Shown: piece after piece, positions 1-64,000 of the stretch
How the letters are laid out: the number at the start of each line of letters is the position of its first letter
Position numbering within the stretch: the stretch's first letter is position 1
Assembly (NCBI GenBank): GCA_019828565.1
Contig: JAHDYR010000053.1
Span: 284,214-348,213, forward strand
DNA length: 64,000 nucleotides
Reading direction: 5' to 3'
Source: Carpediemonas membranifera BICM
Taxonomy: Eukaryota > Protista > Fornicata
Program-made: the position numbers and the translations under genes
The notes under the pieces: model-generated
Told to the model about the DNA's origin: nothing
Databases searched by the model: none
The model's input: only the letters and a program-made list of their open reading frames with translations

Positions 1-1
1 C

Positions 2-384: not shown

Positions 385-2941
385 ATGGACCTGCAGCGCA
401 TCCTGGAATACAAACAACTAGTTCGTAGCACACCACTCTATCACACAGATCGACAAACTCCAGGACGAAGCCGAAGAAGCTGCGCTGAAGCTGGATTCGG
501 AGAACGAGCGCACCCGGGCGCTCAAGAGCCACACGAAGAGCGTCGAGCAGGAGCTCCAGAACTGCAACAAGCTACAGATGGAAACTGACGCCGAGATCGC
601 CCGCATAGAGGAGACCGTTGGCGTGCTGTCCGCCGAGACCGAGGCCGAGCAGAAGGAGATCGTGAAGGTCGAGGCCAAGACCGAGCAGAGCATTCAGCAG
701 CTCAATGAGCACCAGAACAGCTTGCGTGGGATACAGGCGAAGATCGCGACGCAGACGGAGCAGCTTGGGCTAAGCCAGGAGGCGTATGAGCAGTGGTCGC
801 TCGTCATCAAGCAGAAGAGCGACGACGCCGCCGCGCAGATGTCGTACATGAAGACGGACGAGGCCAAGCTGAAGGAGCTGCAGACGAAGATCGACCATAA
901 CGACCGCGAGAAGGAGGCACTTCGCGAGGGCCTTGCGACGGACGTCAGCTTGACGCGCACGAAGCAGACGATCGTGAACAGGCTCGCCGAGGAGTTCAGC
1001 GAGGAGCGGCAGGCCGTCATCCGCCGCCACGCCGAGCTCGAGGACCTCGCCCAGACCATGGCGAGGAAGGACGCAGACATCGAGGAGGAGCGGGCCGAGA
1101 CCGAGGAGGAGACGCAGCTTGACGACGCGCTGCGCATCCGCATGAACGAGGACGAGGAGGCGCTCCGCCTCAACCGCCTGGCCGAGAAGGAGGTCACGCA
1201 CCAGGAGACTGTGTCTCTCGGGACGCTCGAGACCGTCCGCCAGAGTCGTATCGAGGACGAGCGCGCCCGCGAGGAGCGGCAGCGCCAGAACGCCCTCGTG
1301 CGCAGCGGCATCGGGGCCGGCGAGAAGGAGGGCCGCACGTGGCAGACCCAGACGGCCAAGACCAACCAGGAGACGCTGGCCGCGAGCGCCAAGCGCGACG
1401 GCGTCCAGAAGGAGATCGAGGCCATCAAGCTGGCCGCCAATACGCTGGTGACGAAGGAGAGGAGCGTCGCCGAGCGCCAGGCCGAGATCAAGAAGCGCTA
1501 CGACGAGACGGTCGAGCTCCAGGCCGCCGCGAAGGCCGAGCAGCGGGCGCTCGACGAGCAGCGCATGAAGCAGCGTGACCTGCGCGACGCCAAGATTAGC
1601 GAGGAGCGCTCGCTCAACACCGACATCAGCGGCGCGCAGAGCATGCTGCGGAACCTGACGTCGTCCGTCCGCGACAAGGACGCCGAGCAGCAGAAGCTCG
1701 TCCGCAAGCTGTACTCCGTGAACTTCGAGGTCCAGAAGCTTCAGCGCCGGCTCGAGCGCGCGCAGGGCCACCGCACCGCGGAGGAGAAGACCGCACTCAA
1801 CGACAAGATCGCGAGCCTCGAGGCGTCGCTCGCCGAGCGGAAGGCGGAGTTCAAGCTCCTCCAGCAGCAGGAGACCAGCCAGGCGCGGACGCAGGCTGCC
1901 GACCGGAAGGAGCTCGACATGCTCAGAGCCCGCCTGGACGAGGCCAGCACGCACCGCAGCGAGCTGGAGCTCGTGACGAGCACGTGCGAGCAGGAGAAGC
2001 TGAAGATGCAGACGCTGCGCAACGATGAGCGCGTGCGCGTCGACCAGATGCGCGTGGAGGTGGCGAAGAAGACCGAGCTCGTCAGCGTGGCGCTCAACAA
2101 GTCCTTCTACTGGGAGAACAAGCTCGCGCAGACCGAGCTGACCCGGGCCGAGCAGCTGATGAACGTCAAGATGCTCGTCGACGAGACCGAAAGCAACGTG
2201 AGGACGCTGCGCGAGGAGCACTCGCGCATCACCAACGAGGTCAACCGCCAGCAGCTCGTCAACGCAAACCTCAGGAAGAAGCTCGAGGTGCGCCAGTCCA
2301 AGATGGGCGTTGACGAGGACGGCAAGCCGCTCGATCAGACCACCATCATCGGCCGCGCAGCCCTCGAGAAGCAGCGCCTCGAGGAGGAGGGCTCGGCGCT
2401 CCACGAGAAGATCGAGGCGCGTCGTGCGGAGGTGACAAAGTACGAGAAGATGGTGGAGGCCTTCAAGTCCGCGAACGCCGCGGCCAAGGCGAAGAACAGG
2501 GGCGGACACAGCGCCCAGACGGAGGAGCTCCGGCAGAGCCTGCGCGCGGACGTGGACGCGCTGGAGGCGACGCAGAGCAGGCTGACGAAGGAGAACCGCA
2601 GCATGCGGGAGGCTGCGAAGTTCAATAACCAGCAACTCTCATCGATCTCCGCCCAGCTCGACGTCAAGATGGCAGAAGAGCGCCAGCTGGGCGCCGACCT
2701 TGACGACCTGAAGGCCAAGCGCCGCAGCGAGCTCGTCAAGGCCAATACCGCCGTCGCCGCGGCCAGCGAGGAGTTCAGCCGCGTCATGCAGGTCTCCGAC
2801 AAGATGCCCGAGACCGTCGGGCGGTACGTCGTTAGCAACCAGTGCATGGCTGTCCTCCGGTCCGTGGCGTCGGACGCCGAGAAGCTCCAGCTCGACAAGG
2901 GCAGCCACGACCGCCTCGTCGCGGCCACGACCGTCGAATAG
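385..2941 (+). CDS. CCDC39: Coiled-coil domain-containing protein 39 (axonemal 96-nm ruler, FAP59); exons 385-420, 449-2941
   Basis: Splicing 421-448 joins MDLQRILEYKQL to IDKLQDEAEE... in frame with ORF 578-2941; motifs SHTKSVEQEL, QEAYEQW..KQKSDD...Y...DEAKLKEL and LYSVNFEVQKLQRRLERAQG...EEKTALNDKI match CCDC39. Confidence 0.85.
421..448 (+). other. Spliceosomal intron, 28 nt (CCDC39)
   Basis: GTTCGT...TCACACAG; removal restores frame. Confidence 0.85.
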
Positions 2942-3432
2942 GGCATTTGTTCCAACATTCCTCCGATAAACTCTCCTGTGACGATGAGGCGACCCAGGCA
3001 CTTCGCTGCGTGCACTCGTAAAGCAGAGCATTGCCTGATTCAAGACGCGATGTGGGGCAAGGAGCTCGTCTCAACGCTCAGCTGTCTCGTGTCTACTAGG
3101 TGTTGTTTGAAAGCCGACGCATGTCGTTGAAACAGTGAACAGACATGACCCATTGGCCACAATCTCATAAATTCACTTGGTTGTTTTGCGTTGCTCTACG
3201 CTTCAGCCAGCAGGTGGCTCCCGACCCTTCGCGCCGCGACAGGCAGATGGCAAGGGGTGATGTTCGTCTCGGCCAGACGAAGATGGCTGGCTCGCTGAAG
3301 CTCATTGCTCGACCTTCAGTCGATAGCCAGAGATGAACAAGTCTGCCTCGGAGATAAACAGGCTGACTCGCGATGTTGCATACACACCATCTGTTATACA
3401 AGGCTATTTACTGTAATATATCCTTAGTGTCA

Positions 3433-6400: not shown

Positions 6401-7850
6401 ATATCATTTGATGAGAGGATGAAATGGGTGAGGACGGGGACGTTGACAGGCACATTGTCGACGGTAAACTGGTAGACCCCGAACTTGACCAGGTCACCGG
6501 GGGTCTCAGTAGTCTGAGTGACTAGGGTGGCAGCGACCTGGGCGGTCGTGTCAGTGTACACCACGTTATCGCATGTCCTCAGCTCCATCTCCACTTGGAA
6601 TGGTGCGTTGTACTTGATAGTCTCCGGTGCATCGAACACAGTCTTGTCGAGGCAGATCACCGGCACCTGAGTGGAGCTAGTAGTCACTAGCTTGCCCTCG
6701 AGATACACTCTGATCGTTGTATCGGTGGACGTGGTCGACACGAAGTCAGCGCACACCTGGCCGGCATCCACGTAGTACTTGAACGGCCGGGCTGGGGCAG
6801 ATGCGGGGCCGATCTCCATGGTCACGAGGTTGGCCCAGTCGTAGCCAATAAAGGCGGTCTTCGGGGGGGCGAGACATACAGTGTGTGTGCCCCCAGCCAC
6901 CTGGTAGGCAGGGGTGACGGCGAAGGACAGGGCAGCCTTCTCATCCACCAGGGGACTGAAAGGGGTGGCTGCGATTGACCCGGTTGGGGTCATTACGGCG
7001 CCGTGCACCCTGTCAGTGAACGTGGTCCCGCACTCAAAGGGCCAGTATGCCGCGGCCCCGGGGAACGTGGCGAAGTAGTCAGTATCGGTCCATGACTCGT
7101 TGCCTGTGCGTATGTGGCGGCCATAGATGGTGTTGAACTCGTTTGTGCTTCCTTTGCCCGCATAGACTACGCCGCTGACAAAGGGGCGGTCCATGATGAA
7201 CACGTCGTCCATGTAGCCGATAAAGTGGTCGCCTGTGGGTTGCATGGCGGATATGGATGCGCCTAGGACCAGCAGGCCGCCACTGACAATGTGGTGGGCG
7301 GAGGAGGTGAGGCCAGCGTGCTGCTGGACGCCGTTGGCGTAAACGGTGAGCTTGCCGTCGGATGCGCGGGAGATCACGAGCTGCAGCCACTCATTGGGCG
7401 GCAGCTCAGTGTAACTCCATTGACCATGGGTCCCGCCAACGTCAATTAACAGGTTGATGACTTGGCGGTCTTGGTACTGCAGACCTATGCGGAAATCCAC
7501 ACCGCCGTCGCAGCAGTCGGTTACTTCAGCAGCGCAGTCTACAGTGGGGTTCGTACTCTTGATGCCTGAGGAGGCACAGCCGTGCTCAGTGGCATATGAT
7601 ATCCATGTGTAGTTGCTGCCGAGAGTAAACGACGGAACATACACAGCAAGCGAGATGCCGGCCTCCAAGCTTGGGAATGAGAAGTCTTCAGTGGATAGGT
7701 AGGTTCCAGGTGTTCCACTGAACGCGACTGAGTTAAGAAGAGAGGAATAAACGAACGGTAACACTCCTCGGCCGCATAAATGGCCGGGACGTCAAAAGCG
7801 AAAGCATAAACGATGAAGGAGCACAAAACAAGCAATGCTGCAGTGCCCAT
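3433..7850 (-). CDS. Large type-I membrane/surface protein: signal peptide, LamG/pentraxin-like jelly-roll, beta-rich Ig-like repeats, C-terminal TM with Cys cluster; exons 7850-7757, 7727-3433
   Basis: Signal peptide MGTAALLVLCSFIVYAFA joined through intron 7728-7756 to ORF 3433-7764; LamG-like NEWLQLVISR..GKLTVYANG...LLVLG...FIGYMDDVFI; TM FLPIVLTVLFLILLCCCVCC. Confidence 0.8.
7728..7756 (-). other. Spliceosomal intron, 29 nt (surface protein)
   Basis: Minus strand GTTCGT...TAACTCAG; phase 1, yields EECY-L-AFSGTPG. Confidence 0.85.
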
Positions 7851-8190
7851 CGCCGATGCTTCTCGTACTCGTCGCGTCTTTGCGAAATACGTGTAGTGAC
7901 GCCCCGATCCCAGCCTCAAGAGATGCAGTCCGCCACCAATGTTCAGCACCCTAGCTGGTACGATACTCATATATTGGCTTCAGTGACATAGCGCCAGACG
8001 AAATATTGGCACTTGCGGCACGCCACAGCACAATACGGGATAAAGAGAACACAGTTGCAGGGCTGTGAAAGTGAGCTGTGAGCTGGGCTACGCTCACAGT
8101 GCATGTACGCGAGACTGTGGGGTCAATGATGATGATACATGAACCATAAATGGAAAGTCAAACTTTGTCATCTCCCTTGACAGACGCAAA

Positions 8191-9148
8191 ATGGCTAAGA
8201 GCAAGGGTTCCCTGACTACTTTCCAGTATCTTCTTGCCGGTGGCATCGCCGGTGCTGTTTCTAGAACTATCACATCTCCTCTTGATGTCGTGAAGGTTCG
8301 TAATGCTTCTCTGAGCTCTCACACAGATCCTGTTCCAGACTGGCTCCCAGTACGACAGCATGTCTGTTGCTATCCGCTCTATTATGGCCAAGGAGGGTGT
8401 TGCCGGCCTCTGGAAGGGTAACGGCATTGCTCTTCTCCGCATTGCCCCCTACTCTGCTGTGAAGTTCACCGCCTTCGAGCGCTACTCCCCCTACTTCCAG
8501 GACGCCAACGGCCGCCTTACCCCTGGCCGCAAGCTTGTCTGCGGTGCCCTCGCTGGCATGTCCGCCGTTGCCGCCACCTACCCCCTCGATGTCGTCAAGA
8601 TGCGCCTCACCGTCCAGTCTGCCGAGAACCCCGTCTACCACGGTGTTCTCCACGCCTTCTACAAGATCGGCAAGGACGAGGGCCTCAAGGGCTTCTTCGC
8701 TGGGCTGACCAACACCCTCATCGGCACCATCCCCTACGAGGGCGGCCAGTTCATGGCTTACAACATGATCCAGGACTACTGGAACGATAAGGTCGGCCGC
8801 CCCATGAAGGTTTACGAGCAGCTCCTCGCTGGCTGCGCCGCCGGTGCCTTTGCCCAGACCATCTCCTACCCCTTCGACACTGTCCGCAAGATGCAGGCCA
8901 TCTACCCCCAGAAGTACCACGGCGTCCTCCAGTCCTTCGCTGTCATCATGAAGGAGTCCGGCCCCACTGGCTTCTACAAGGGCACCACCGTCAACCTCAT
9001 CAAGGTTCTCCCCTTCGCCGCCCTCAGCTTCGCCACCTTCGAGCAGACTAAGCGCGCCCTCGAGCTTTACAACAAGAACCAGAAGGCCAAGCTTATCCAG
9101 AAGGTCGAGGCCAAGGTGACCGAGGCTAAGAAGGCTGTCAAGAAGTAA
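8191..9148 (+). CDS. Mitochondrial carrier family (SLC25) protein, adenine nucleotide/CoA-carrier-like; exons 8191-8295, 8327-9148
   Basis: Three Px[DE]xx[KR] repeats (PLDVVK, PLDVVK, PFDTVRK); LLAGGIAGAVSRT, GLWKGNG...RIAPYSAVKF. Confidence 0.93.
8296..8326 (+). other. Spliceosomal intron, 31 nt (carrier)
   Basis: GTTCGT...TCACACAG; removal gives PLDVVK|ILFQTG. Confidence 0.92.
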
Positions 9149-9150
9149 AT
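9144..9150 (+). terminator. Putative polyadenylation signal AGTAAAT overlapping the stop codon (representative instance)
   Basis: Same heptamer overlaps TAA stops at 14267, 20043 (minus), 27043 and 30476; resembles Giardia AGTRAAY. Confidence 0.6.
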
Positions 9151-9416
9151 TGCTTTTCATTCTGCCAGTTTAGCTTTGCATTGGCTCATGCGTGCCTTGT
9201 TGCGTGTTTGCTGCAGGGATTACGGACCGATGCAGCGAGTCAATACCGGTGGCCTGGTCGTCAGGAAATGCTGACCCCAGAGTTGGGTCGAGACTGTCTA
9301 ACAATGGCCATTTTACCACTTCGCACCGGCCCTTTCTGCTGACTAGCAATGTTCCACGACGATTGTGCTGACAAATCTTGCTCATTTTTTTTCGGGAAAA
9401 AAAATCCAGAGACGTG

Positions 9417-9908
9417 ATGTCCGCTGAAGAAGTCGCTGCTGTCCCCGAGCTCCCCCCTCGCCAGATCTCCCGCCACGAGGCCAAGGCCCGTGCCAACTTC
9501 GAGAAGGTTCCCGGCCTTGAGAAGGTCGAGAACCGCATGGTGAAGTTGAAGCGCGCTGGCGCCACCTTCAACATGGCTCAGGCTGATGTGTATTTCCACA
9601 AGGCATCCAAGACCTACATCATCTTCGGTGAGCCCGTCTTCGAGGATCCCACTCAGCGCTTCGCCCAGCAGGCCGCTGCCGGCCAGGAGGAGGCCAAGGC
9701 TGCCGCTGATGCCGCCGCTGCCGGTGAGACCAAGGACGCCGAGACCACCGAGGAGGTTGAGGCCGAGCCCGTTGACGCCACTGGCGTTGATGACACCGAC
9801 ATTTCTCTCGTCATGAGCCAGGCCGACTGCACTCGCGAGGCCGCCATCAAGGCGATCAAGGAGAACAACAACGATGTTGTTGCTGCCATCATGGCTCTCT
9901 CCGAGTAA
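9417..9908 (+). CDS. NACA: Nascent polypeptide-associated complex alpha subunit
   Basis: [29 protein letters not shown] (NAC domain); UBA-like [34 protein letters not shown]. Confidence 0.92.
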
Positions 9909-10130
9909 CTCCAATAAAGGCTCCGGACCAGTTGTTGTGCGGACCACTCCACCGGACTCGGCAAATTCTTCGGAAAAGTGTAGACACCAGTGGCACCTGG
10001 TGCTGTGTGTGTGTCCATTTTGACACACATCTGGCGCCAACTACGTCGACCGCGCTGTATCCAAAGATATAACTTGACTTTTCAGGGCACCCTGAGAACC
10101 AAAAACAAACCAACTTTCCCAACAAGCGCA

Positions 10131-10774
10131 ATGCGTTTCATCCAAAATGAAGAACTATCAGCTCTTGCAGCATCAGTAAGCGAGCTTCAGTCCGAAGGAG
10201 CGCAGTTGATCTGCCATGTCGAGTTGTACAGCATGAAGGGCGCGGCGTCCGAAAAGAAGATCAGCAGGTCTTTAGAAGACGATATAATCTCCTCTTCTTA
10301 CCAAGACAACCCTTTCGACGTCATTAGCAACAACAAAGGCCGCAAAATGTACATCAACCTAATTCATACGTTGAATAGCGTCTTCCCAAGCAACGGTTCG
10401 CATGCCCACAGCCCGCTCACACAGATTTTACATACGTCACACCAGACCACTTCGTTGCCGAGCCTTCCGCCCATGTTATCGCCGAGTTCTTACTCAGCCG
10501 CTTTGAAGGCATCCCCGGCGGTCGGGAACTCATCAGCGAGACCCTGTCGACACTGGACTTGGCCATCATGGTCAAGGACTGCGAAATCTACTCCCTGGCC
10601 ACCGAGGACGACCTCTTTGGCGACGAGGCCCTCTGGTCCTTCTGCTTCTTCTTCCACAACCCCAAGACGAGGAGGATAGCAGTGTTCGCGTGCCGGGCGG
10701 TACCGTACGGTAACCTGCTCGACTGTTGGTCTGACCACGAAGTATGCCACGATGTGTACTACGATGTATACTGA
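10131..10774 (+). CDS. MAF1: Maf1, repressor of RNA polymerase III; exons 10131-10395, 10425-10774
   Basis: MRFI...ELYSMK; RKMYINLIHTLNSVFPSN|DFTYVTPDHF after splicing; DCEIYS...LWSFCFFFHNPKTRRI. Confidence 0.88.
10396..10424 (+). other. Spliceosomal intron, 29 nt (Maf1)
   Basis: GTTCGC...TCACACAG; phase 1; restores conserved FPxxDF motif. Confidence 0.9.
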
Positions 10775-10991
10775 TATACTATACTGGCTGTGTGTAAGGC
10801 ATGTAAATGACCTTTTGTGAGGTGTGGCCAGCCTGAGGCTCATTTATGGCATTTATGGTGGGAAACGTATCGCTCGAGGACAGAGGATGTTGCCGCTCGA
10901 AAAGCCCGGCATTCTGCACGGAACGCTCCCAGAAGGATGGAACCCGAACATTATCAAGATCGGCACCATTCCTGAGAAGTCAAGACGGCAG

Positions 10992-11381
10992 ATGGCCGAG
11001 GGCGTACAGCAAAACTCGGCTTGCGATCCACCAGCGCAAGCCGCAAAGCTTAACGCGTACACAGACACAATTGAGGCGCTACTAAAGCAGTTTTGGGACA
11101 ACTACAACAGCTGCATAAGCCCTCTCGACCCTTCGTTCGCCCGCATTGTCGCCCAGCTCCAGCGTGTTCAACGGCGACTCCAGCCCCTCACCGAGTCCGT
11201 CGCCGCCACAAGAGACAACGACCTGGTGAACGCGCTGCTTGGCCCTGAACTGGACGGGCAGGAGGAGGTCGTCGTCTCTTTTGCCACGCCGATGAAGGAG
11301 CGCATCCAGCGTGTACTGGATGTGTACGAACGGCTCAAGACGGTGGTGGGGGCGAGGGTCTCTAGGCCGGGGGTGAGGTGA
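10992..11381 (+). CDS. Hypothetical helical protein (start uncertain)
   Basis: Part of ORF 10824-11381 with coding-like codon usage from MAEGVQQ; no recognised motif. Confidence 0.55.
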   Translation: MAEGVQQNSACDPPAQAAKLNAYTDTIEALLKQFWDNYNSCISPLDPSFARIVAQLQRVQRRLQPLTESVAATRDNDLVNALLGPELDGQEEVVVSFATPMKERIQRVLDVYERLKTVVGARVSRPGVR

Positions 11382-11703
11382 CTGCGGCTGGTTTAGTGGT
11401 GAATGAACGATGATGGATGACGTCATCATCTGCACATGCTGCACATGTTTAGGAATATTTGGGACTAGGAGTGATTCAATTAAACGTACTACCCGCTTGG
11501 CTTGTAGTGCGACCCTCGGCCCGAACTAGGAATAGCACAAATCATTGATGCATTCAAACCATAATGAATCTGGAGCTGGGTATTTAGACGAAGTCACTAG
11601 CCACAGCCCGATGCCAGGCACCCTGGGCTCCTCAATCCGACCGAGGAGGACCTTATCTCCATCAGAAGACGGGAGTACGTATTTCGCAAAGGACACAAAG
11701 AGG

Positions 11704-14271
11704 ATGGCAAGGGTCAAGGCAGTCGTCTGTGGCCAGCAGATAATCATCACAGCAGCCTATGATGGAACAATAACAATCCAAGAACAGAAGGGATCGCACT
11801 CCCTTGCGGTCAGTGCGCCTCCGAACTCTCCCATTCGTTGTCTAGCTCTGCATCCGACCAAGACAATTGTGTACGCTGGATGCGATGATTTTAACGTATA
11901 CTCTATCAATTACAGCACGTACACGAGCTCCAAGGTGATCTCTGCCGCCCATGCGGACTACATCCGAGACATCAAGGTTCACCCCGATGGATCCTTCCTC
12001 TATACGTGCTCAGACGACCGTACCATCCGCAGATGGTCATTATCTACCTTCCAGCTCGATGCCGTGTACCGCGATCCCAACCTCAAGGGCGACGAGAATG
12101 CGGCTCACGCCCATTATGTCATGAAGCTCGCCATCGACCCTAGCGGTAACACGCTGGTGTCTGCCTCGCTCGATCAGACGATCAAGATGTGGGATGCCCG
12201 CGCCAGCAAGTCGAGCGGCATTCCTCTCAAGAAATGCACCATCGAACACGCCCACGACGTCGGCGCCGATGCCGTCGCCTTCCTCGACGGCACGACTCTC
12301 CTCTCCGGCGGTGACGACAACCTCGTGAAGATGTGGAACGTCCGCACGCGCCAGTGCATATACTCTCTCAGCGGCCACAGCAAGGCCATCACCGCCCTCA
12401 CGGCTCACCCCAGGGTCGGCCTCTTCGTGTCCGTGGCCGAGGACGGACAGGCTATCGTCTGGGACAAGGAGGGCCACGAGGTGTTCCGCCAGACCATCCT
12501 CATGCGGGATGACCGCGAGAACAAGGACAAGGTCTGGGCTGTCGCACCCGTGCCGGACAAGGCTGCTGTTGTGGTCGGCCATGACCGCGGTACTACCACT
12601 GTCAAGCTCCAGAAGGGCCGGCCCGTCGCTGTGTTCAACGGCGGCCGTGCCACCAAGGACGTGTACATCGTAGCAGGCGACGTGCACCGCTTCCAGGCCC
12701 GCCGCGCCATTACTGAGAGTACTGCCGTCCTTCAGGGCAAGGTGACCGAGCTCTTTGCCGTTTCCGAGCTCGAGGCCGAGGACCTCGTCCACATTGAGTC
12801 CGGCCACGTCGTCACGGCCCTCCACGCCTCCCCCGACGGCAAGCACACGGCCGTCCTGACCCGGGGCCGGGGCGACTCAGCCCAGACACTGTCCGTCCAC
12901 ACGGTGGCCAAGACTTGGACCAGGCGGGACTTTAAGACAGAGACGTCGGTCACAGGCACGCTCTCGGTCGGTGCTTTCACGTGGGAGGTGCCCAACAAGG
13001 ACGGGAGGACGGCGGGGCCCGTGCCCCAGAGGTTCGGGACGGTCCATGCAGACTCGCGCGGGCTGGCCGTGCTCGACGTCTACACCATGCCCGGCAAGGA
13101 ATTCGACCGCGCCTTCCAGATCTCGATGCCGTATGCCGCGAACGCCCTCTTCGGCGGCCCGCTCATGGGTGTGGCGAACAACCAGACGAGCGAGACGAGC
13201 GTCCTCAACTTCTACGCCTGGCCGGAGGAGGGCGCGAGAGGGATGCCTCTCCTCAACCAGATTGCTCTCGACTCCCCAATCAAGGATGTCGCGTGGTCTC
13301 GCGTGTTCTCGGTCGACGGTCACGATGTCCAGCTGGTTGCTATCCGCATGGCCGAGCGGATCATGGTCATCCAGTTCTGCCCCGAGATCGCCCAAGCCGC
13401 CATAGCCCAGGCCCCCAAGAACACCTCCGCCACTGATGTCGTCTGCGGCGATGCCTGGCGCTTCCTGGGCGTAGTGAACGAGAAGTCCAAATCTGCGCTG
13501 TGGGTCGAGTCTGCTCTCGTCACGACCACGGCGAGCGGGGTCTACTCGACCGTCTGGCCCGCCGTGAGTCCCGCGTGTGCTGCCCCCCAGCCCATGGCCC
13601 GCCAGTCCCACCTGCTGTGCCTCACTCAGAAGCCGGTATACTCTATCGGCGCGACTACGGCTGAAGACCCCTCTGGCACGGACCTCCCCATCGTACTGTG
13701 CGCGGACCAGGACAAGGCGGTCCGTCTCGTGCCAGTGCCCATGGCCTTTGTAGAGATGAGGGTCGCCCTTGCCCGGGGTGACTTCGACGCCGCCCTCGCC
13801 AAGGGTAAGGCCCTGCGTGATGCGGACCGGGAGCAGGCCTCCGTCCTCCTCGAAGGGGCCAAGAGACTTCGCGAGGCGCTCGACCTCACAGCCAGCAAGG
13901 AGAGGAAGCTGGACCTCGCCCTCAAGCTCGAGGACTTCCCCCTCGCCGCAGAGATCGCCGCCGTGCTCGACGACCCTGCTGTGTGGCAGCAGGTAGGCGA
14001 TGAGGCTCTGCGGTGGGGCGACCTCGCGGTAGCCTTGGACGCCCTCGAGAAGGCCAAGGACCTCAACAGTCTCTTCCTCGTGTATGCGGCGCTGGACGAC
14101 GCGGAGGGCATGCAGGCACTGATCCCTCGGCTCGAGGAGGCCGGGCTGCATAATTTGGAGTTTTACGCGAGCTATTTGACTGGCGACTACGAGGCCGCGC
14201 GGACAGCCCTTGAGAGCGAACCGACGGCCGTGGTGCAGCTGTTCGACCGGGCATATAAGCCCCAAGAGTAA
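11704..14271 (+). CDS. COPB2: Coatomer beta-prime subunit (divergent)
   Basis: N-terminal WD40s (AHADYIRDIKVHP, CSDDRTIRRW, HAHYVM, SASLDQTIKMW) and solenoid tail WQQVGDEAL...KAKDLNSLFLVY...HNLEFYASYLTGD typical of Sec27. Confidence 0.82.
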   Translation: MARVKAVVCGQQIIITAAYDGTITIQEQKGSHSLAVSAPPNSPIRCLALHPTKTIVYAGCDDFNVYSINYSTYTSSKVISAAHADYIRDIKVHPDGSFLYTCSDDRTIRRWSLSTFQLDAVYRDPNLKGDENAAHAHYVMKLAIDPSGNTLVSASLDQTIKMWDARASKSSGIPLKKCTIEHAHDVGADAVAFLDGTTLLSGGDDNLVKMWNVRTRQCIYSLSGHSKAITALTAHPRVGLFVSVAEDGQAIVWDKEGHEVFRQTILMRDDRENKDKVWAVAPVPDKAAVVVGHDRGTTTVKLQKGRPVAVFNGGRATKDVYIVAGDVHRFQARRAITESTAVLQGKVTELFAVSELEAEDLVHIESGHVVTALHASPDGKHTAVLTRGRGDSAQTLSVHTVAKTWTRRDFKTETSVTGTLSVGAFTWEVPNKDGRTAGPVPQRFGTVHADSRGLAVLDVYTMPGKEFDRAFQISMPYAANALFGGPLMGVANNQTSETSVLNFYAWPEEGARGMPLLNQIALDSPIKDVAWSRVFSVDGHDVQLVAIRMAERIMVIQFCPEIAQAAIAQAPKNTSATDVVCGDAWRFLGVVNEKSKSALWVESALVTTTASGVYSTVWPAVSPACAAPQPMARQSHLLCLTQKPVYSIGATTAEDPSGTDLPIVLCADQDKAVRLVPVPMAFVEMRVALARGDFDAALAKGKALRDADREQASVLLEGAKRLREALDLTASKERKLDLALKLEDFPLAAEIAAVLDDPAVWQQVGDEALRWGDLAVALDALEKAKDLNSLFLVYAALDDAEGMQALIPRLEEAGLHNLEFYASYLTGDYEAARTALESEPTAVVQLFDRAYKPQE

Positions 14272-28309: not shown

Positions 28310-28993
28310 GTGCTGTCTGCAATAAACATTTGCGGATCAACTATGGTAGTTTGGCGGGTGGCGCTGAAGCAGCGACGGGGGAGTCAACGATACGTGGAAC
28401 AACACAGGCGATGACTATGACAACTTACGTCACCATGTTGAAGGAGACTTCCTCTTATATTTACCCACGTGACACCGTGAAGGTGATTCACACCTCCTTG
28501 CTGAGATCTGAAAAACTCGCAGTTTAAGGTTGGCTGTTTGCGTGCCAAAAAGTTTTTTGTCTTCTAGTGGATGAGCCGACCTTGCACAGGGGCTTACCGC
28601 TAATTTTCTCTGTATTGATAGATATTCACAATGCCTCGAGGCCATACAGGCCCCGGGCGTTAGAAATTGGACCTCTCGTCAATGAGATTTTCTCTGATTA
28701 CCGCGGAGACAGCTTGTTTCTTGCTCATTTCAACAAGGATACTTGAACATGCTGCAAATATGTTGTATAGCTTGTCATAACATCTGCACAAAGCTTCTTC
28801 TGTTCGTTTTATCTCATCTTCATCATGGACATTCGCCCAAGCTGGAGTGCAATTGTTGAAGCAAAAAACTGAATGCAGATATGGCCAAACACGGCAATGT
28901 CAGCTCAAGCAAGCACACAGGTACCGCTTGCCCTGGTCATTCTGAGCACTTTATGCGGCACTTTCATTTCCCCTACCTCAATTCCCCGCAAAC

Positions 28994-29355
28994 ATGCTCA
29001 GTGAGATCCATATCTCGCCAGACGCGTCAATTGAAGACGCACTCCGTAACCTGAAGGGAGCTTATGGCAGAGATCCATCCAATGCCGAGCTTTTGAAGAC
29101 CGCCCGCTATTTCTACGCCAATGGCCAGTACAAGCAGTCTCTCCTTTGCTGTGAGATCCACGTATGTCTAATAGTCACCATTTTACACAGCAGAGCCGCA
29201 CTAACAAGAGCGAGAACTCCTCCCACCTGCTAGGATACTGTGCAGCAATGCTCAGCGACAGAGCCCGCGCCATCGAGTGCTTCAAGATCACGTCAAACAA
29301 GAGCTATCCCACGGACTGGCAGCTGCTTGTCGAGCTTATGGTTGAACTCGAATGA
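28994..29355 (+). CDS. Small TPR-like helical protein (110 aa); exons 28994-29161, 29191-29355
   Basis: Splicing joins ARYFYANGQYKQSLLCCEIH to QSRTNKSENSSHLLGYCAAMLSDRARAIECFK, a TPR-like helix pair pattern. Confidence 0.72.
29162..29190 (+). other. Spliceosomal intron, 29 nt (TPR-like gene)
   Basis: GTATGT...TTACACAG; phase 0. Confidence 0.8.
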
Positions 29356-29804: not shown

Positions 29805-30480
29805 ATGCCAGGGCTGTTCCAAAGAAACGCACGGACATTTAAGCCTAAGAAACACGTACAGCAGAGCACAACGAAGCGGGAGGCTCTTGCCAAGTTTGCA
29901 CAAGCCACTCTTGGCTCTGGGAACTTGAGAGAAGCTGTAACCCTCCCAGAAGGCGAAGATTGCAATGAATGGCTCGCGGTCAACAGTTTGTAGTGCCATC
30001 AACTCCCTATTCCCTCACACAGCCGTGGACTTCTTCAACCAGATCAACATGCTGTACTCGACCATTTCCGAGTTCTGCACCCCTGAAACCTGCCCGACCA
30101 TGACCGCTGGGCCCAAGTTCGAGTACCTGTGGGCGGATGGTGCCGCCTATAAGACCCCTACCCGCCTCCCTGCACCCCAGTACGTCGAATGCCTCATGGG
30201 GTGGGTTCAGACGCAGCTCGACAACGAGTCTATCTTCCCCAGCAAAATCGGCGTGCCTTTCCCCAAGAATTTCATCCAGATTGTGAAGACGATCTTCAAG
30301 AGGCTGTTCAGGGTCTATGCTCATATTTATCACAGTCACTTTGAGCAGATTGTGGATCTTGGCGAGGAGGCACACCTCAACACCATCACGAAGCACTTTA
30401 TCTACTTCGTGCAGGAGTTCGATCTGGTCAATGAGAAGGAGCTCGTGCCCCTTCAGGATCTGATTGACCGTTGGCAGTAA
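29805..30480 (+). CDS. MOB1: MOB kinase activator 1; exons 29805-29985, 30023-30480
   Basis: TFKPKK, ATLGSGNLREAVTLPEGEDCNEWLAVN|TVDFFNQINMLY, KRLFRVYAHIYHSHF. Confidence 0.96.
29986..30022 (+). other. Spliceosomal intron, 37 nt (MOB1)
   Basis: GTTTGT...TCACACAG; phase 1 in the Thr codon of AVNTVDF. Confidence 0.95.
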
Positions 30481-52339: not shown

Positions 52340-52901
52340 ATGGTTTTCGAGGTCGTTCATCCTGACGGCAGCGTGATAGTATATGTTAACCCAAAGCAGT
52401 TTCAAGCGATCATGAGGCGCAGGACGTCCGGAATCGTCCTTCGTCGCCTCCCGGTATGTTTCCTCGCCAAATCTTACTCAGAAACGGACGCACTTCGCAG
52501 GAAGACCGCGCGATGAGACAGGAAAGTATGTTGTGGTTCATGACCGCGAGAACCGAGTCCCAATCACCATTCCCAACCCGACCACAGGTACTACCATCAT
52601 TCCCAACGAGCCAGAGCCAGAGCCGACGTCTGACGGCCTTGGCGCAATGCCCCGTACCACTGCGCAGTCATCCGACCCGCCCAGATCTGAAACTCAGCCC
52701 GCTCCATCCCGCCGAGGCGGTGCCCGACGCCGCCCGGCTCCGAGGGCCACCGTGAACAGCCAAGTGAATCCCGGGACGACCACGAGAGGGCCCTCAGATG
52801 AGAGCTCGCCCAGTGCTGCGGGACTGCCGGGGGCCGAGTCAGGGGCGGTGTTTGGCCGGGCGATGAGCATGGTGGAGCTATGCAACAAGCTGTTTTGCTG
52901 A
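52340..52901 (+). CDS. Divergent NF-YA/HAP2-like transcription factor; exons 52340-52453, 52482-52901
   Basis: YVNPKQFQAIMRRR (cf. NF-YA YVNAKQYxxIxxRR) spliced to KRTHFAGRPRDETGKY (cf. RxRGxGGRF). Confidence 0.6.
52454..52481 (+). other. Spliceosomal intron, 28 nt (NF-YA-like)
   Basis: GTATGT...TTACTCAG; phase 0; links two ORF fragments in frame. Confidence 0.82.
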
Positions 52902-53274: not shown

Positions 53275-53652
53275 ATGCTTTCCACTCTTTCCAAGGTTTG
53301 TGCCCGCATGGTCTCATTGTAGCTAATACAGACCATCTCTCTGGACTTTGCCCGCATGGCCTCCACCGTTACCATCAAATACCCCGGTGTCCCCGATATT
53401 GCTGCTGCTGTTGGCGAGAGACTCGATAAGGTCCTGAAGGAGGCTGTTCCCGGCTTCAAGAACTCCTGCAACGGCGCCGCTGTGTGCACCAAGTGCATGG
53501 TCTCCATCAATACCGACCACCTCTCCAAGCTCCCTCCCGTGACCGAGGATGAGGCTGACGGCCTTGAGGACGTCGATGCTGAGCCTAACCAGCGCCTCAC
53601 TTGCCAGATCAATGTCACGAACGACATGGACGGCCTTGAAATCATTGCGTAA
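53275..53652 (+). CDS. [2Fe-2S] ferredoxin (adrenodoxin/hydrogenosomal type) with N-terminal presequence; exons 53275-53295, 53332-53652
   Basis: C-x5-C-x2-C (CNGAAVCTKC), EDEADGL, RLTCQI; spliced leader MLSTLSKTISLDFAR. Confidence 0.9.
53296..53331 (+). other. Spliceosomal intron, 36 nt (ferredoxin presequence)
   Basis: GTTTGT...TAATACAG; 3n length with in-frame TAG. Confidence 0.85.
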
Positions 53653-53790
53653 ATGTAGTTTTGTGGGTGCTGCGGTATTACGATGAGCGGAAGAAGATGT
53701 GATGGCTGCAGGCCGATGCCAAGACGTCTCCTCGCTTCAGAGGGTGCACATGGTTGCCTCATCATTTCCTCATCATTTTCGAACGTGAAC

Positions 53791-58564: not shown

Positions 58565-58752
58565 ATGAACTTATATGCCCAGCTTTTGTTGTATGTTTGA
58601 GAGTTGGATTTGCACAAATGGAGAAAAGTTGGAGGATGTAGGTGGATGCCCAGAAGTGCTGCTTACCGGTGTGTTCTCACGCTGGTGGCGTCAAAAGGCG
58701 TCAAAATCGTAAAGTGCGCAGAAAAGTTTTGCAAACGAACATCTCAACAACA

Positions 58753-59421
58753 ATGCGCCGTGTTTTCGAGGTCAAATACGATTTCAGCGCACAGGAGACA
58801 TCTGAGCTTACGGTCAGGAAGGGCGATATGCTCGTCGAGTGCGCCCAGGATGCCCCCGCCGCAAACGGATGGATTTACGTCGAATTGCAGCTTGATTCTT
58901 CCAAGAAGGGCTTTGTTCCCTACTCCTTCATCGAGGAGGTCTCTAAGCCCATCACTCCGCCCCGCATGCAGGAGGCCAGCACTCCCCTCCGTAGAACAAC
59001 CCTTGAATCCAGCCCCCGCCGCGTTTCCCCCCGCCGCAGCCCTGCAGCGACCCGTTCTATGTACTACTCCGCTGTGAGCCAGCCGTCCACCCGTCTTGCA
59101 GACTACGCCACATCCTCCCCCTCCTGGTCGCCCTCCCGTACTGTTAATCGCCACGAGATGACTTTTACTGGCTCTTCAACCATGCCCCCGCCCGGCGGCC
59201 TGAGGCAGACCACCATGCCCGCCATGCCTTCACACCAGCCTGTGTCGGATGCCGACAACAAGCTGAAGCGCCTGGAGGAGTCCATCGCGGACATCCTGAG
59301 CGAGGTCCGGTCCGCCCAGGAGCAGAATGCCCAGATCGTCCAGCGCGCCACAGAGCTTGAGAACCTCATCGCGGATGAGCGGCGCAACTGGCGCGACGTT
59401 GCTGGTGTGAGCTCGATGTAA
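58753..59421 (+). CDS. SH3-domain protein with C-terminal coiled coil
   Basis: VKYDFSAQETSELTVRKGD...GWI...KGFVPYSFI. Confidence 0.88.
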   Translation: MRRVFEVKYDFSAQETSELTVRKGDMLVECAQDAPAANGWIYVELQLDSSKKGFVPYSFIEEVSKPITPPRMQEASTPLRRTTLESSPRRVSPRRSPAATRSMYYSAVSQPSTRLADYATSSPSWSPSRTVNRHEMTFTGSSTMPPPGGLRQTTMPAMPSHQPVSDADNKLKRLEESIADILSEVRSAQEQNAQIVQRATELENLIADERRNWRDVAGVSSM

Positions 59422-59701
59422 ACTAGAGATCCCGAGATTGAGTGGGGCTGACTGTGTAAAGGAAGCTGAATCGCTACTATTTGCCAAGGTGGAACTACAG
59501 TGGCTTCGTTGGCTTATCCGTAATCTGGATCTCGGAGTTATTTCTGGCGGCGATTTGAAAAAATAGCAGAGCTCTAGCTGGTCTAGCAGGATAGCTGGGA
59601 CGCTCATGGCAGGCTTGGGCTGACGCAGGACTGGGAGGATGACGAGATCAAAAACTTGCCTGAAAGAGACAAAAGGCAGGCGCCAAAAATCACAATACAC
59701 A

Positions 59702-60419
59702 ATGCGTGAAGCTGATCTTGTAGCAGTATGTTTACTATATGGACATGGTTACATAGGGCTTGGAGGAAGACGTCATCCCCACGTTGGATGAGCGTATTGA
59801 GGACATCAAGAGCCGCATCAAGCGCTTGAAGAATACCTCCGGAATGGAGAGAGAGGATGAGCTTGACGAGACCCAGAAGATGATTGCCGGTCTTAGAAAT
59901 GAACTCGACGGCTTCAGGCTCGACGTCGAAGGCCTCGAATCGACCAAAGCCCAATGGAGACAGGTCTACGAGGGCTATGACGAGAAGTACCGTGATCTCA
60001 AGAACGAACTAGAGATGAAACGCCGCCTCCATGGGCAGACGGAGGCCGAGGCGACCCTGGAGCAGGTTGGGCAGGTTACTGATAAGCAGCTGCTCAACAT
60101 CGCACAGAACCTCAACACAGACGCCATCGACAGGCTCCAAGAAGCTGAGCGGGACGTCCAAGAGATGATTGAGATGAACACCGAGGCGGCTAAAGTGCTG
60201 CTCAGTGATCGCGAGACGATGGACCGCATCCGGAACGACATGGGGAGCATCAGGAACGACCTCAACATTGCCAGGAAGCAGATGACAGCCATGGCTCGGC
60301 GGCTGGCGACTGATAAGATCCTGCTGTGCCTCATCCTGATCATCATCATCGTGTTCATCGTTGCGGTGCTCTGGTTCGTCATTTCACCCCCTATCAGCGG
60401 TGACGACTTCACTAAGTGA
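59702..60419 (+). CDS. Qb-SNARE, NPSN/VTI1-type; exons 59702-59725, 59757-60419
   Basis: Habc helices, SNARE motif, ARRLATDK followed by C-terminal TM; ATG supplied by spliced exon MREADLVA. Confidence 0.82.
59726..59756 (+). other. Spliceosomal intron, 31 nt (SNARE)
   Basis: GTATGT...TTACATAG; phase 0. Confidence 0.85.
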
Positions 60420-60521
60420 GGGGCTAGCCTGTATCATGTGTTTTAGTGCAGTTGCGTCGTCGGGCGTTTCATATAAAGCCCCACAAAAATTGGCTTAAGC
60501 TGCACCTCATTTCAAATCGCA

Positions 60522-62483
60522 ATGCTTAAACGCTTCCAGGACGGCTGGAAAAAGACTGTGGATGCTGTTGCTGATGCTGTGGCACCCTCACAGATGCGTT
60601 TGACCCGCTTTGCTATGTCTTGGGAATCTCTATACGACAATCTCGACGTTTCCCCGGAATCCGTGGACATGGCCCAAGCTGAGTGGAAAGCGATGGTCCG
60701 CAGCAAGGCCCAAATCTGCTGCCATGCTATCAACGAGATTCTAGAGCTCCTAGAGGCGGAGTCGAAGAACCCCCCTCCAGTCCAAGACAGCACCTACCTT
60801 CCCTGCATGGAGCACGTTCTTGCAGAGAAGAAGCTGGACAAGCTCTTCATTGCCGGGGCGACTGACATGCCCACCGGGCTAATGGGCCTCGTTCTTGAGT
60901 TTACCACGCATCTCCTGTCCTATGGTCGGGGACAACTGCTGACACTCGCAGCATTCGTTGTTCCTCTGAACGACTTTATGGAGAAACTGATCCAGCACAT
61001 GGGCGACACCCTCACCCCGACCCTCTCTGCCCGCAACAGGGCTCTCCTCGTCACACTTCTCGACCGCATTGCTGATGACATCGAGATCTCCCCAGCCGCG
61101 GCTGCCTCCATGATTCGCAACGGCGTGCCTCTCCCGCTGAAGCTGTGCTCCGAGGTCCTGGATATGGACGAGACAACTGTGCATGAAGCATCCATCCTCC
61201 GCAGGGTCGTCGTCAAATTCAGCGCCCATAGCCCCTTCACCCACGACGAATGGAGCGCATCGAGTGTCGCCCCAGCGCTTATTCGCGGCCTGTGGAAGGC
61301 GCTAGCCACACTCCCCGCCGAGATCCCCAATGTCTTTGCGTTCACCCACGAGTGGGGCGATCGAGACATCCCTCAGGAGGCGAGGACTACATACCAGCTC
61401 AAAGAGCTTCTAAGGAAGATCAGGTCAGTCAATAGAGTGGCTGCGAGCGACGGAGCGCTTGCTGCTCTGCTCGTTGAGGACTTCTCGCTCATGATGCAGG
61501 TTCAGTTCATTCCACGTCTTGTCAGTGGCGACGAGAGGGAGGTGGCCAGGATGACGAGGAACCTTACACTGCTCGTCGAGGAGTCAGCAGAGGCTCTGCT
61601 CAAGGCGATCGCCCAGAGTCTGTTCGGTGACTTCACCTCAGTCGACACTGTCACGTGCGACCTCACGACCATGCAGCCTAAGCGCGTCTCAAAGGCCCCT
61701 GTTGACGAGTACGACGCCCTTCTTCCCGTCATGCCCGGCGACTCTGCTCCATCCGCCTCTACCGCCCCACCGACCCTTCCCCAGACCGACAGGGCGTGGC
61801 CAGTGGTGGCGCAGTGGCTTTTCTCCCGTTTGACCGATCTTGACTCTGCCATCTGTCTCTGGACCATCAGGTTCTTCGCCGCCTGTGTGACTGCGAGATG
61901 TGATGCCCTGAATCAGTGTCTCATGCCCGCCACGCTAAGGCCAGGCAGGGTGAACTGGAAGGCGCTGGTGATCGCCCGCGGGATGGAGTGGGAAGGGTTC
62001 AAGGCTGAGGTCCGCGCTGATGCGGAGAGTATGCTCGAGGCCCGCACCAAGGAGGCTGGTGTCGCTGCTGTCCACGACGCACTCGCAGACGCGCCAAAGA
62101 CCACACCGGCCGGGATGTTTATGACCCAGCTGGCCGCTGCCGTTGCCCACTGGGCGACGAACTCGGCCCGGATCAATATGGCGCTTTCAATGCTCCTCAC
62201 AAACATCGTGACAAACCCACTATACACTGGTGCGGTCGACAACACCGGTGACGGTGACTCCATGTCAGTTTTCAATGCCCTGGGGCTCGCCAAGACCGAG
62301 TGCCAGAGCTTGATCCCGACTGACCACGACGAGCAGCTTGAGGCGCTGGGGCGGGCCGCGGAAGGTGTGAGGGAGGTGCAGGGCGGGACTATTGACCCGC
62401 TGACCAACTCGATCCTGCTCGACCTCACGGCGATTGAACTCGACGAGATTAGCAGCCTGTGCGCCAAGCTCCTGGCGGTGTGA
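60522..62483 (+). CDS. FHIP/FAM160 (RAI16-like) FTS-Hook-interacting protein candidate
   Basis: ILELLEAE...PCMEHVLAEKKLDKL....TDMPTGLMGLVLEFTTHLL and NSARINMALSMLL resemble FHIP family motifs. Confidence 0.6.
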   Translation: MLKRFQDGWKKTVDAVADAVAPSQMRLTRFAMSWESLYDNLDVSPESVDMAQAEWKAMVRSKAQICCHAINEILELLEAESKNPPPVQDSTYLPCMEHVLAEKKLDKLFIAGATDMPTGLMGLVLEFTTHLLSYGRGQLLTLAAFVVPLNDFMEKLIQHMGDTLTPTLSARNRALLVTLLDRIADDIEISPAAAASMIRNGVPLPLKLCSEVLDMDETTVHEASILRRVVVKFSAHSPFTHDEWSASSVAPALIRGLWKALATLPAEIPNVFAFTHEWGDRDIPQEARTTYQLKELLRKIRSVNRVAASDGALAALLVEDFSLMMQVQFIPRLVSGDEREVARMTRNLTLLVEESAEALLKAIAQSLFGDFTSVDTVTCDLTTMQPKRVSKAPVDEYDALLPVMPGDSAPSASTAPPTLPQTDRAWPVVAQWLFSRLTDLDSAICLWTIRFFAACVTARCDALNQCLMPATLRPGRVNWKALVIARGMEWEGFKAEVRADAESMLEARTKEAGVAAVHDALADAPKTTPAGMFMTQLAAAVAHWATNSARINMALSMLLTNIVTNPLYTGAVDNTGDGDSMSVFNALGLAKTECQSLIPTDHDEQLEALGRAAEGVREVQGGTIDPLTNSILLDLTAIELDEISSLCAKLLAV

Positions 62484-62776
62484 AGGCGTGGGTAGCCATA
62501 GGTAAATATCGTATAAATGCCGTAGGTAAATGGCTGGGCTTGGCTTGTGTGTCTATGGGTTTGAAGAGATACAATCATGCTCTTGGATGAACGCTCACAT
62601 CTACTTTGTTTGCGTGAATACGACTTGAATTGGCATCAAGGCCGACTGTAACAGGTAGAGTAAATCGTTTGGACTGTGATCCAATCATGCTGATTTGGGA
62701 TTTATGTGATCTCACGTAATTCGTCAGATTCATGTATCGCATCAGGCACACAGCATAGACAGCCCGTGTGGAGGTA

Positions 62777-64000
62777 ATGAACTTCACTCAGCGTTTGTTA
62801 CACCTCCCTGAACCTATAATACAGTGCTTGAGCATCTCTTACGAGTTTCCAAGCTCACAGATGTCTTCTCCGTCATGTGGGAGTATCTTAACCATTCTGG
62901 CGACCCAGTAATGATCGTATCTCAGCTTGTACTAATTGCCTTCGTTTTATGGGTACGTAGCACTACACTAAGCACCGTTACATAGGTTCTTTTCCGTTAC
63001 AACACGCCTAACAGCAAGCGTCCCAGAGAGGTTCGCCCCGCCGATTTCAGCGACAGGTTCGCCCAATTCATGACCTACCGCAAGCCCTTGGCCCCCAAGT
63101 CCCGCCAGATCACGCAGGACCGCTACACAATCGTCAAGCACGGTTCCTTGAACGACTCAACCCCCAGTGACAACCCCGTCGTCACCCGCGTCAAGGACGC
63201 CGCGGGCGACGTTGTTGACCTCACTGACTTCAGCACTACCGACTTCCTCCGCCTCTCTCGCAGTGTGGGCTCGCGCCAGGCTGCGGAGACCACGATTGCG
63301 TCCTACGGCGTCGGGTCCTGTGGCCCCAGAGGCTTCTACGGCACGATCACCCCCCACATGGACCTCGAGAACCACATTGGTGAGGTCATGCGCGGCCTGT
63401 ACAACGAGCTGATCGCCCTGTGCGGCAAGAAGTGGGCCCCCACCTCTGCCGAGTCCCACGCCGCCATTGCCTACTCCTTTGGCTACGCAACGGTCTCTTC
63501 CGTCATCAGCGCCTTCGTGAAGCACCAAGATTACGTCGTCTACGATGAGGCGGCCCCCTCCTCCATCCAGACTGGAGTGAACCTCTCCAAGTCAGCCCAT
63601 GCCTGCGCCTACGCCCATAATGTGCCCACTGGCGGCCACAGCAGCGGAAGGGTCGCCTCTTCCGTTGAATCTGCCATTGAGCGCCTCGAGGGCGCTGCTG
63701 CTCTTCAGACGAGAGACAAGCAGATCCGCCGCAAGTTCATCGTCATCGAGGGCATAAGCGCTCAGCGCGGCACCCTCGTAGACCTCCCCGCCGTCCTCGC
63801 TGTCGCCCGCAAGCACCACTGGCGCGTGCTCATCGATGATTCCTTCGCCATCGGCGTCCTCGGCGCCAAGGGCCGTGGTACGATCGAGCACTACGCCGAC
63901 CAGGGCCTGCTCTCGGACCCGGCGATGGTGGAGTTCATCAGAGACTACGTGATGGTGACGTTCACCTTCAGCAACGCCCTCGGCTCCATTGGCGGCGCGT
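62777..64000 (+). CDS. LCB1: Serine palmitoyltransferase subunit 1 (partial, runs off the window); exons 62777-62792, 62825-62952, 62986->64000
   Basis: N-terminal TM; YGVGSCGPRGFYGT, YSFGYATVSSVI, IDDSFAIGVLG..GRG..EH; FSNALGSIGG lacks the PLP lysine, as expected for LCB1. Confidence 0.9.
62793..62824 (+). other. Spliceosomal intron, 32 nt (LCB1 intron 1)
   Basis: GTTTGT...TAATACAG; phase 1. Confidence 0.8.
62953..62985 (+). other. Spliceosomal intron, 33 nt (LCB1 intron 2)
   Basis: GTACGT...TTACATAG; phase 0, terminal TAG is an in-frame stop; removal gives continuous TM LIAFVLW|VLFRY. Confidence 0.88.

Follow-up and report, generated by a model that had tools for sequence, protein, structure and literature searches.

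Eleven introns of 28-37 nucleotides (nt), all with GT-AG ends, lie in a stretch of DNA from the fornicate protist Carpediemonas membranifera BICM; this whole stretch of 64,000 nt (contig JAHDYR010000053.1 of assembly GCA_019828565.1, positions 284,214 to 348,213) is referred to below as the window. These elements are genuine minimal U2-type spliceosomal introns, and each of them ends in an eight-base box, TNAYWYAG, in which a putative branch site is joined directly to the acceptor. The adenosine at position -6 of the intron, A(-6), is probably the branch nucleotide, this being the reading best supported by the sequence comparisons described here. We therefore regard the introns, with fair confidence, as ordinary U2-type introns near the smallest workable size, in which a fused branch/acceptor module would pair with the U2 small nuclear RNA (snRNA) and expose A(-6) as the branch. 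The window belongs to a 24.24-Mb genome of 69 contigs; it is gene-dense, with a G+C content of about 58% (57.1% in the published C. membranifera genome), and encodes proteins that are typically eukaryotic or ciliary, including CCDC39, DRC7, PP2C and WD40 proteins.

Eleven minimal introns and their removal from RNA

The donors of the 11 introns (seven GTT and four GTA) all read GT[AT][CT]G[CT], and the acceptor octamers are TCACACAG in four introns, TAACTCAG, TTACACAG and TTACTCAG in one each, and TAATACAG and TTACATAG in two each. Re-reading of the sequence confirmed every coordinate, length, donor and acceptor that an initial annotation, made from the letters alone, had assigned to them. Ten introns are on the plus strand and one, 7728-7756, is on the minus strand; their interiors are mutually unrelated in sequence. 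When both strands of the window were searched, the pattern GTWYGY-N12-30-TNAYWYAG matched solely these 11 sites, a number 10-fold higher than the 1.05 +/- 0.94 matches (maximum 4) obtained in 100 second-order Markov simulations. Every intron offers a single phase in which an ATG-bearing upstream frame is joined to a long downstream frame, with coding scores of 0.07-0.38 per codon, and the upstream frames, if left unspliced, terminate 2-94 codons past the donor. The readable first exons comprise 5-98 codons, so that the introns are biased toward the 5' ends of their genes.

Evidence of splicing was provided by RNA contigs from four sequencing runs of one sample, which were compared with positions 7000-12900 of the window (5.9 kb). 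The presence of poly(A) tails and of a 5' library adapter identifies these contigs as cDNA. All three introns located in this interval are spliced out, which bears out the junctions predicted by the initial annotation: the contigs lack exactly 7728-7756 and 10396-10424 (29 nt each), and 8296-8326 is skipped as 31 nt with GT..AG ends. The contig that crosses 8296-8326 differs from the window at 23 other sites and hence probably represents a paralogue in which splicing occurs at this very position.

Homology supports the same junctions. In Pfam scans performed exon by exon, rather than on joined exon models, exon 1 matched positions 2-78 of the Maf1 profile and exon 2 its positions 82-173 on the two sides of 10396-10424, and the exons flanking 29986-30022 matched the Mob1 profile at positions 1-28 and 30-170. 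The Mito_carr profile is matched at positions 3-30 at the close of exon 1, immediately before 8296-8326, and three Mito_carr stretches follow in exon 2.

The individual introns are located in diverse genes. Intron 421-448 (plus strand, 28 nt, GTTCGT...TCACACAG) was defined by sequence and reading frames in a CCDC39-like gene, where it joins, in phase 0, a 98-codon exon 1 (ATG at 127) to an 830-codon frame; exon 2, which has its stop at 2941, matches the CCDC39 profile. The start of the window (1-2000) is part of an inverted duplication of this gene, the other copy lying at about -8750 to -8300 in window coordinates, and an identical copy of the intron occurs there on the minus strand at -8343..-8316, 8.7 kb leftward. 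Intron 7728-7756 (minus strand, 29 nt, GTTCGT...TAACTCAG), for which frames accompany the RNA contig that omits precisely these 29 nt, lies close to the 5' end of a gene of 1,430 codons that has a Laminin_G_3 domain. Two further introns rest on RNA contigs from three runs together with the profile matches given above: 8296-8326 (plus strand, 31 nt, GTTCGT...TCACACAG) in a mitochondrial-carrier gene, and 10396-10424 (plus strand, 29 nt, GTTCGC...TCACACAG) in the Maf1 gene, where splicing passes over another AG further upstream, at intron positions 15-16.

The remaining introns are all on the plus strand. Intron 29162-29190 (29 nt, GTATGT...TTACACAG) was recognized by sequence and frames in a small gene that matches nothing in Pfam, in which it joins in phase 0 a 56-codon exon 1 (ATG at 28994) and a 54-codon exon 2 with coding scores of 0.15 and 0.24. 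Intron 29986-30022 (37 nt, GTTTGT...TCACACAG) interrupts the Mob1 gene and has, besides the profile evidence, an orthologous counterpart that is discussed below. The intron at 52454-52481 (28 nt, GTATGT...TTACTCAG) is in an NF-YA-like gene, as judged from frames and a weak CBFB_NFYA match in exon 1 (25.5 bits), whereas frames and a Fer2 match in exon 2 place 53296-53331 (36 nt, GTTTGT...TAATACAG) past codon 7 of a [2Fe-2S] ferredoxin gene that spans 53275-53652 on the plus strand. Intron 59726-59756 (31 nt, GTATGT...TTACATAG) interrupts a SNARE-like gene, on the evidence of frames and weak Sec20 and V-SNARE_C matches in exon 2. Finally, an aminotransferase-like gene contains two introns: 62793-62824 (32 nt, GTTTGT...TAATACAG) past codon 5 (ATG at 62777, phase 1), and 62953-62985 (33 nt, GTACGT...TTACATAG), which opens in phase 0 into a 512-codon frame, the exon downstream of it matching Aminotran_1_2.

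The cDNA contigs also yielded adapter-joined 5' ends at 9408, 10084 and 10095 (plus strand), at which transcripts of Maf1 (ATG at 10131) and of the genes that start near 9410 likely begin, and poly(A) tails attached near 9927-9930 and 10816-10820. Spliced-leader trans-splicing was considered for the three 5' ends, which share an extra ...GACCTTGGCTGTCACTCAAA and whose alignments begin at a genomic AG. This candidate was rejected: the extra sequence ending in GACCTTGGCTGTCACTCAAA is missing from the genome except for one match with one mismatch, and unrelated papers on plants, humans and Neisseria list it as a library adapter. The extra sequence therefore marks adapter-ligated 5' ends.

A genome-wide positional rule and the candidate branch nucleotide

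The positional constraint on T(-8) and A(-6) that the initial annotation had proposed from 11 introns holds throughout the genome. Strict matches, with T at -8 and A at -6, numbered 1612 against 417 in a control in which the pattern was read backwards (ratio 3.9), whereas three decoy patterns reached only 0.53-0.68 of control: 1229 against 1807 for a base other than T at -8, 1270 against 2374 for a base other than A at -6, and 322 against 532 for a TNAY box placed one base further upstream. The excess of strict matches, combined with the lack of any excess among decoys, corresponds to roughly 1,350 real introns with fixed T(-8) and A(-6), a figure that has to be read as approximate since the decoys lie below the control, which is not an exact null. 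By the same approximate measure, introns that lack T(-8) or A(-6), or in which the box is shifted, would form a small minority at most. Some of the strict matches recur in repeats.

The composition of the introns was analyzed in a local set of 19 candidates from 264 kb around the window, selected by requiring T(-8), A(-6) and Y(-5). These introns measure 28-44 nt, nine of them 28-29 nt. Of the 19 donors, 13 have T and six have A at position +3 (T in seven of the 11 window introns); Y at +4, G at +5 and T at +6 are in common with the GTAYGT type. At the 3' end, positions -5 and -3 are always Y, -4 is A in 13, T in four and G in two introns, -7 is variable (C 8, T 7, A 4), and -9 is C in 10 of the 19. 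When the search was anchored on the acceptor only, the hexamers enriched 26-39 nt upstream were GTTTGT, GTTCGT, GTATGT and GTACGT, and the donor class was therefore confirmed without donor bias. The initial annotation had emphasized that no polypyrimidine tract separates the motif from the AG; this is true and trivial, because only Y-W-Y intervene. A pyrimidine tract does exist, placed upstream of the box, where the intron interior is 63-66% pyrimidine and 14% G. Joining of long coding frames across GT..AG pairs of 18-120 nt in the 264 kb revealed no convincing intron of another type, in a screen of low power that retrieved just 4-5 of the 11 window introns, a consequence of the very short first exons that precede most introns. 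A rule useful for annotation is GTWYGY-N(14+)-TNAYWYAG, which picks up small 5' exons that gene callers overlook.

Within the 19 local introns, A(-6) is the sole adenosine fixed in position apart from that of the AG, and the upstream adenosines have neither a common position nor sequence conservation. The RNA-verified intron 7728-7756 contains adenosines at +9, -7, -6 and -2 only, and one intron-like unit of a thioredoxin gene outside the window (described below) contains them at +3, -6 and -2 only. The U2 snRNA of C. membranifera is consistent with a branch at this position. A genome search found six U2 genes (57-68 bits, above the cut-off of Rfam family RF00004). The branch-binding stretch of this U2 is GUGAAGUU as compared with the consensus GUGUAGUA, the three copies that were read showing UCAAGUGAAGUUUC in place of the consensus UCAAGUGUAGUAUC. 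Among U1, U2 and U6, U2 is the snRNA that departs from consensus. When A(-6) is left unpaired as a bulge, U2 G31-U32-G33 (numbered by analogy with the canonical GUAGUA at 33-38) stands opposite Y(-3)-A(-4)-Y(-5) and A35-G36 opposite U(-8)-Y(-9), and the stretch is thus complementary to exactly the conserved positions. Among all registers tested, -6 had the best mean pairing (3.53 of 6).

An orthologous intron points in the same direction. In a relative (GCA_002919055.1, contig PPCM01001551.1) with 92% protein identity in the Mob1 exon, Mob1 is interrupted at the same codon position by a 31-nt intron, GTAAGT...TTACATAG, that retains T(-8), A(-6), C(-5), A(-4) and Y(-3), while the interior, the length and the donor have diverged. 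The fixed adenosine, the U2 register and the Mob1 orthologue together make A(-6), which the initial annotation had also proposed, the best candidate for the branch nucleotide.

Splicing machinery, proposed mechanism and alternative explanations

U1, U2 and U6, each with its recognition box, are all encoded in the genome, U1 and U6 as candidates scoring below the Rfam cut-off. The two identical U1 candidates (36 bits), which are 8.5 kb apart (G000:C17:102719-111413), begin with the universal AUACUUACC and have an Sm-like site. The U6 candidate is in the window itself (28547-28642, minus strand; RF00026, 35.2 bits against a family cut-off of 44; E 4e-6 genome-wide and 2.8e-7 locally), shows the canonical ACAGAGA, AGC and terminal UUUUU, and is the only U6 match in the genome; the default scan of the window had missed it, its score being under the cut-off. 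Near-identical copies are also found for U2, of which two inverted genes lie about 0.8 kb apart (G000:C63:801904-803035). The initial annotation had expected U1 and U6 to be adapted to GTT donors, and the canonical U1 and U6 boxes show no visible adaptation of this kind. Its suggestion of a reduced need for U2AF65 and Prp18 is likewise not reflected in gene loss: the genome encodes a U2AF65-like protein of 414 amino acids that matches U2AF_lg over all three RNA recognition motifs (135 bits, against 50 bits for SF-CC1), and a Prp18-domain protein of 243 amino acids. Six-frame genome searches gave no match for Slu7 (PF11708) or for the SF1 helix-hairpin domain (PF16275), which is a weak negative result that does not show absence.

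An intron of this type consists of a six-base donor, GU[A/U][C/U]GU, a pyrimidine-rich and G-poor spacer of at least 14 bases, and an eight-base 3' module, U-N-A-Y-W-Y-A-G, which, we propose, would unite branch site and acceptor. Intron positions -9, -8, -5, -4 and -3 would pair with U2 G36, A35, G33, U32 and G31, respectively; the bulged A(-6) would then attack the donor, and the AG right behind the short branch helix would serve as the acceptor, leaving a lariat tail of 5 nt. In such a design, the branch site, and not a separate search for a polypyrimidine tract or an AG, would fix the position of the AG. Donors with U at +3 would pair poorly with canonical U1, and we suggest that they could gain a U-G wobble with a G of the U6 ACAGAGA.

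Several points weigh against this reading. The branch nucleotide has been inferred from sequence comparisons. The pairing with U2 is short and degenerate, with a mean of 3.5 of 6 and a base at -7 (C 8, T 7, A 4) that often mismatches U2 A34, and the choice of introns by T(-8), A(-6) and Y(-5) makes the register test circular in part. There is also an exception to T(-8): the last acceptor of the thioredoxin gene, CTATGCAG, has C at this position. The estimate of some 1,350 introns was made against an inexact null, and the U1 and U6 candidates score under the Rfam gathering cut-offs. Furthermore, in the yeast P complex, seven ordered nt and about two more are thought to bridge the branch to the 3' splice site, and Prp18 has been proposed as the ruler for the minimum distance (10.1101/212811, PMC10711555); with Prp18 present here, a 5-nt tail requires a different local geometry.

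The longer tail that would fit the yeast geometry better (10.1101/212811) is offered by an explanation in which the introns are real and UNAYWYAG does no more than extend the acceptor signal for recognition by proteins such as a U2AF65-like/U2AF35 pair or Prp8, the branch being a variable adenosine of the spacer. A U2AF65-like protein is indeed encoded, the spacer is pyrimidine-rich, most introns have at least one adenosine between +12 and -9, and some upstream adenosines, such as that at -9 in 421-448 and in 62793-62824, equal the -6 register in pairing with U2. We nevertheless consider this explanation unlikely: adenosines between +12 and -9 are absent both from intron 7728-7756, verified by RNA, and from the thioredoxin unit, the upstream adenosines are conserved neither in position nor in sequence, and in a 28-nt intron an upstream branch would cut a donor-to-branch distance that is already minimal. 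In the relatives, moreover, a fused branch-acceptor module is proven or accepted (PMC6679479).

A branch at another base of the module, namely A(-7) where present, A(-4) or a non-adenosine, with variable spacing within the box, would be compatible with the A at -7 in four of the 19 introns (UAAC or UAAU, in which either A could bulge) and the A at -4 in 13 of them. Neither -7 nor -4 is conserved, however; a branch at A(-4) would mean a 3-nt tail, and the box shifted by one base has no genome-wide excess. We judge this to be still less probable than a branch in the spacer. Least credible of all, to a degree that makes it very improbable, is that the pattern is a by-product, created either by copies of a mobile or duplicated element ("introner") or by the picking of frame-restoring GT..AG pairs. 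The identical copy of 421-448 in the inverted gene duplication and the repeat-associated matches elsewhere in the genome are in line with such an origin, but it is contradicted by the exact removal in RNA contigs, by the Pfam profiles that run on across the introns and by the orthologous Mob1 intron, which has only the end signals in common; in addition, the 11 interiors share no sequence, and the pattern exceeds chance in the window by the factor given above.

A stronger version of the A(-6) reading can be formulated, in which this U2-type spliceosome keeps the tail fixed at 5 nt despite Prp18 and chooses the acceptor by counting from the branch helix instead of reading the AG, U2 (GAAGUU) has co-evolved with the relaxed box, and donors with U(+3) lean on U6 rather than on U1. 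We put this forward tentatively and regard it as rather doubtful. Choice of the acceptor by counting is hinted at by unusual candidates in two neighboring genes. One is the thioredoxin gene, 21.8 kb left of the window (L004:8064-8439, plus strand), which matches its profile at positions 3-34 in exon 1 and 35-102 in exon 2. The 61 nt between these exons comprise two intron-like units that abut as AG|GT, 8166-8197 (32 nt) and 8198-8226 (29 nt) in L004 coordinates; they represent either a single intron of 61 nt or a pair of introns around a zero-length exon, the removal of which would take two steps. The other is a CFAP410-like LRR gene, 3 kb to the left of the window, in which the 29-nt candidate intron GTTCGT...TGACACTG (L006:6914-6942, minus strand) separates exon 1 (24 codons) from exon 2 (289 codons). 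This candidate possesses the usual box (T at -8, A at -6, CAC) and ends in TG instead of AG (GT-TG).

Comparison with known intron systems

The closest likeness is to the introns of Giardia lamblia and Trichomonas vaginalis, with the consensus sequences [A/C]CTRACACRCAG and ACTAACACAYAG. These are likewise short GT-AG introns of an intron-poor metamonad, with an extended donor of the YGT type (GTATGT) that the C. membranifera donors resemble in part, a branch-like motif that abuts the AG at an invariant distance, and a CAC after the branch A that can pair with the GUG of U2. The U2 stretch ends in GUU in Giardia also (PMC1201135, PMC3510501, PMC6679479), where the pairing of U2 GUGUAGUU with AACUA[A]CAC follows the same register (PMC3510501), and the first intron discovered in Giardia was also small and in a [2Fe-2S] ferredoxin gene (PMC1201135). 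The C. membranifera introns share with this fused metamonad type the motif abutting the AG at an invariant distance but not the CTRAC with A at -8 or -9. Instead, their box is the degenerate U-N-A-Y, U occupies +3 in the majority of donors, U2 carries A in place of the U shared by Giardia and the consensus (GUGAAGUU), and the introns number about 1,350 as compared with about 10-65 in Giardia and Trichomonas. The branch A is at -8 in Giardia and Trichomonas, such that the C. membranifera module, judged by its sequence, looks like that of Giardia minus one AC unit.

The introns of Spironucleus vortens and S. salmonicida (GTAAGTY ... RCTAACAARYTAG) similarly combine a fused branch/acceptor and strict spacing with a pyrimidine-containing motif upstream of the branch (PMC6679479), although their donor is of the GTAAGT type and their branch A is at -9, 3 nt farther from the AG. 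In C. membranifera itself, two carbamate kinase introns were described in 2002/2005 as small, with potential branch sequences that abut the 3' boundary within a pyrimidine-rich stretch and with less 3' conservation than in Giardia (PMC1201135). That description covers two introns, without a position-specific rule, a genome-wide count, snRNAs or splicing factors. We found no genome-wide description of C. membranifera intron signals in the literature, and the genome paper and its supplements give none.

The initial annotation had called the spacing unusually compact. This is correct with respect to Giardia and Trichomonas (-8) and to Spironucleus (-9) (PMC1201135, PMC6679479), compared with which it is tighter by 2-3 nt (by the yeast convention, a tail of 5 nt in C. 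membranifera, 7 nt in Giardia and Trichomonas and 8 nt in Spironucleus), and also with respect to yeast; a precedent does exist, however, in the ciliate Stentor coeruleus. In 91% of the 15-16-nt introns of Stentor, the putative branch A occupies position 10 of 15, equivalent to -6 and a 5-nt tail (PMC9505925). The U2 and U6 recognition boxes are present in Stentor, and its U2 branch-binding site is reported to be conserved (PMC9505925). The Stentor introns are AT-rich, half as long and equipped with GTA donors, and neither Slu7 nor Prp18 was found there, whereas C. membranifera has Prp18; only the -6 spacing is common to these and our 28-44-nt local introns. The likeness is convergent, ciliates being unrelated, and the branch of Stentor is equally putative. 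A constrained branch-to-acceptor distance and the lack of a polypyrimidine tract also recall U12-type introns, from which the C. membranifera introns differ in having GTWYGY rather than RTATCCTT donors, no TCCTT (TCCTTRAC) box, and a matching snRNA that is U2 (RF00004, above the cut-off).

In yeast, natural introns have tails of at least 10 nt, sites as near as 7 nt are used in prp18-deletion cells, Slu7 can be dispensed with at distances under 9 nt, and tails of 7-8 nt have been predicted in Debaryomyces. Yeast structures and genetics set the practical minimum near 7-9 nt and assign Slu7 and Prp18 to longer distances. In C. membranifera, a 5-nt tail appears to be used by all of more than 1,000 introns, and the branch-binding sequence of U2 is a variant one. 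This free-living and culturable relative of Giardia, for which a genome and RNA-seq data are public, would be a natural test case. The 5-nt spacing is extreme, yet it has a convergent and equally putative precedent in Stentor, and the design as a whole is a local variant of the known metamonad one and not a new kind of splicing. In the evolution of the fused branch-acceptor design, C. membranifera bridges the intron-rich Kipferlia and the nearly intron-less Giardia.

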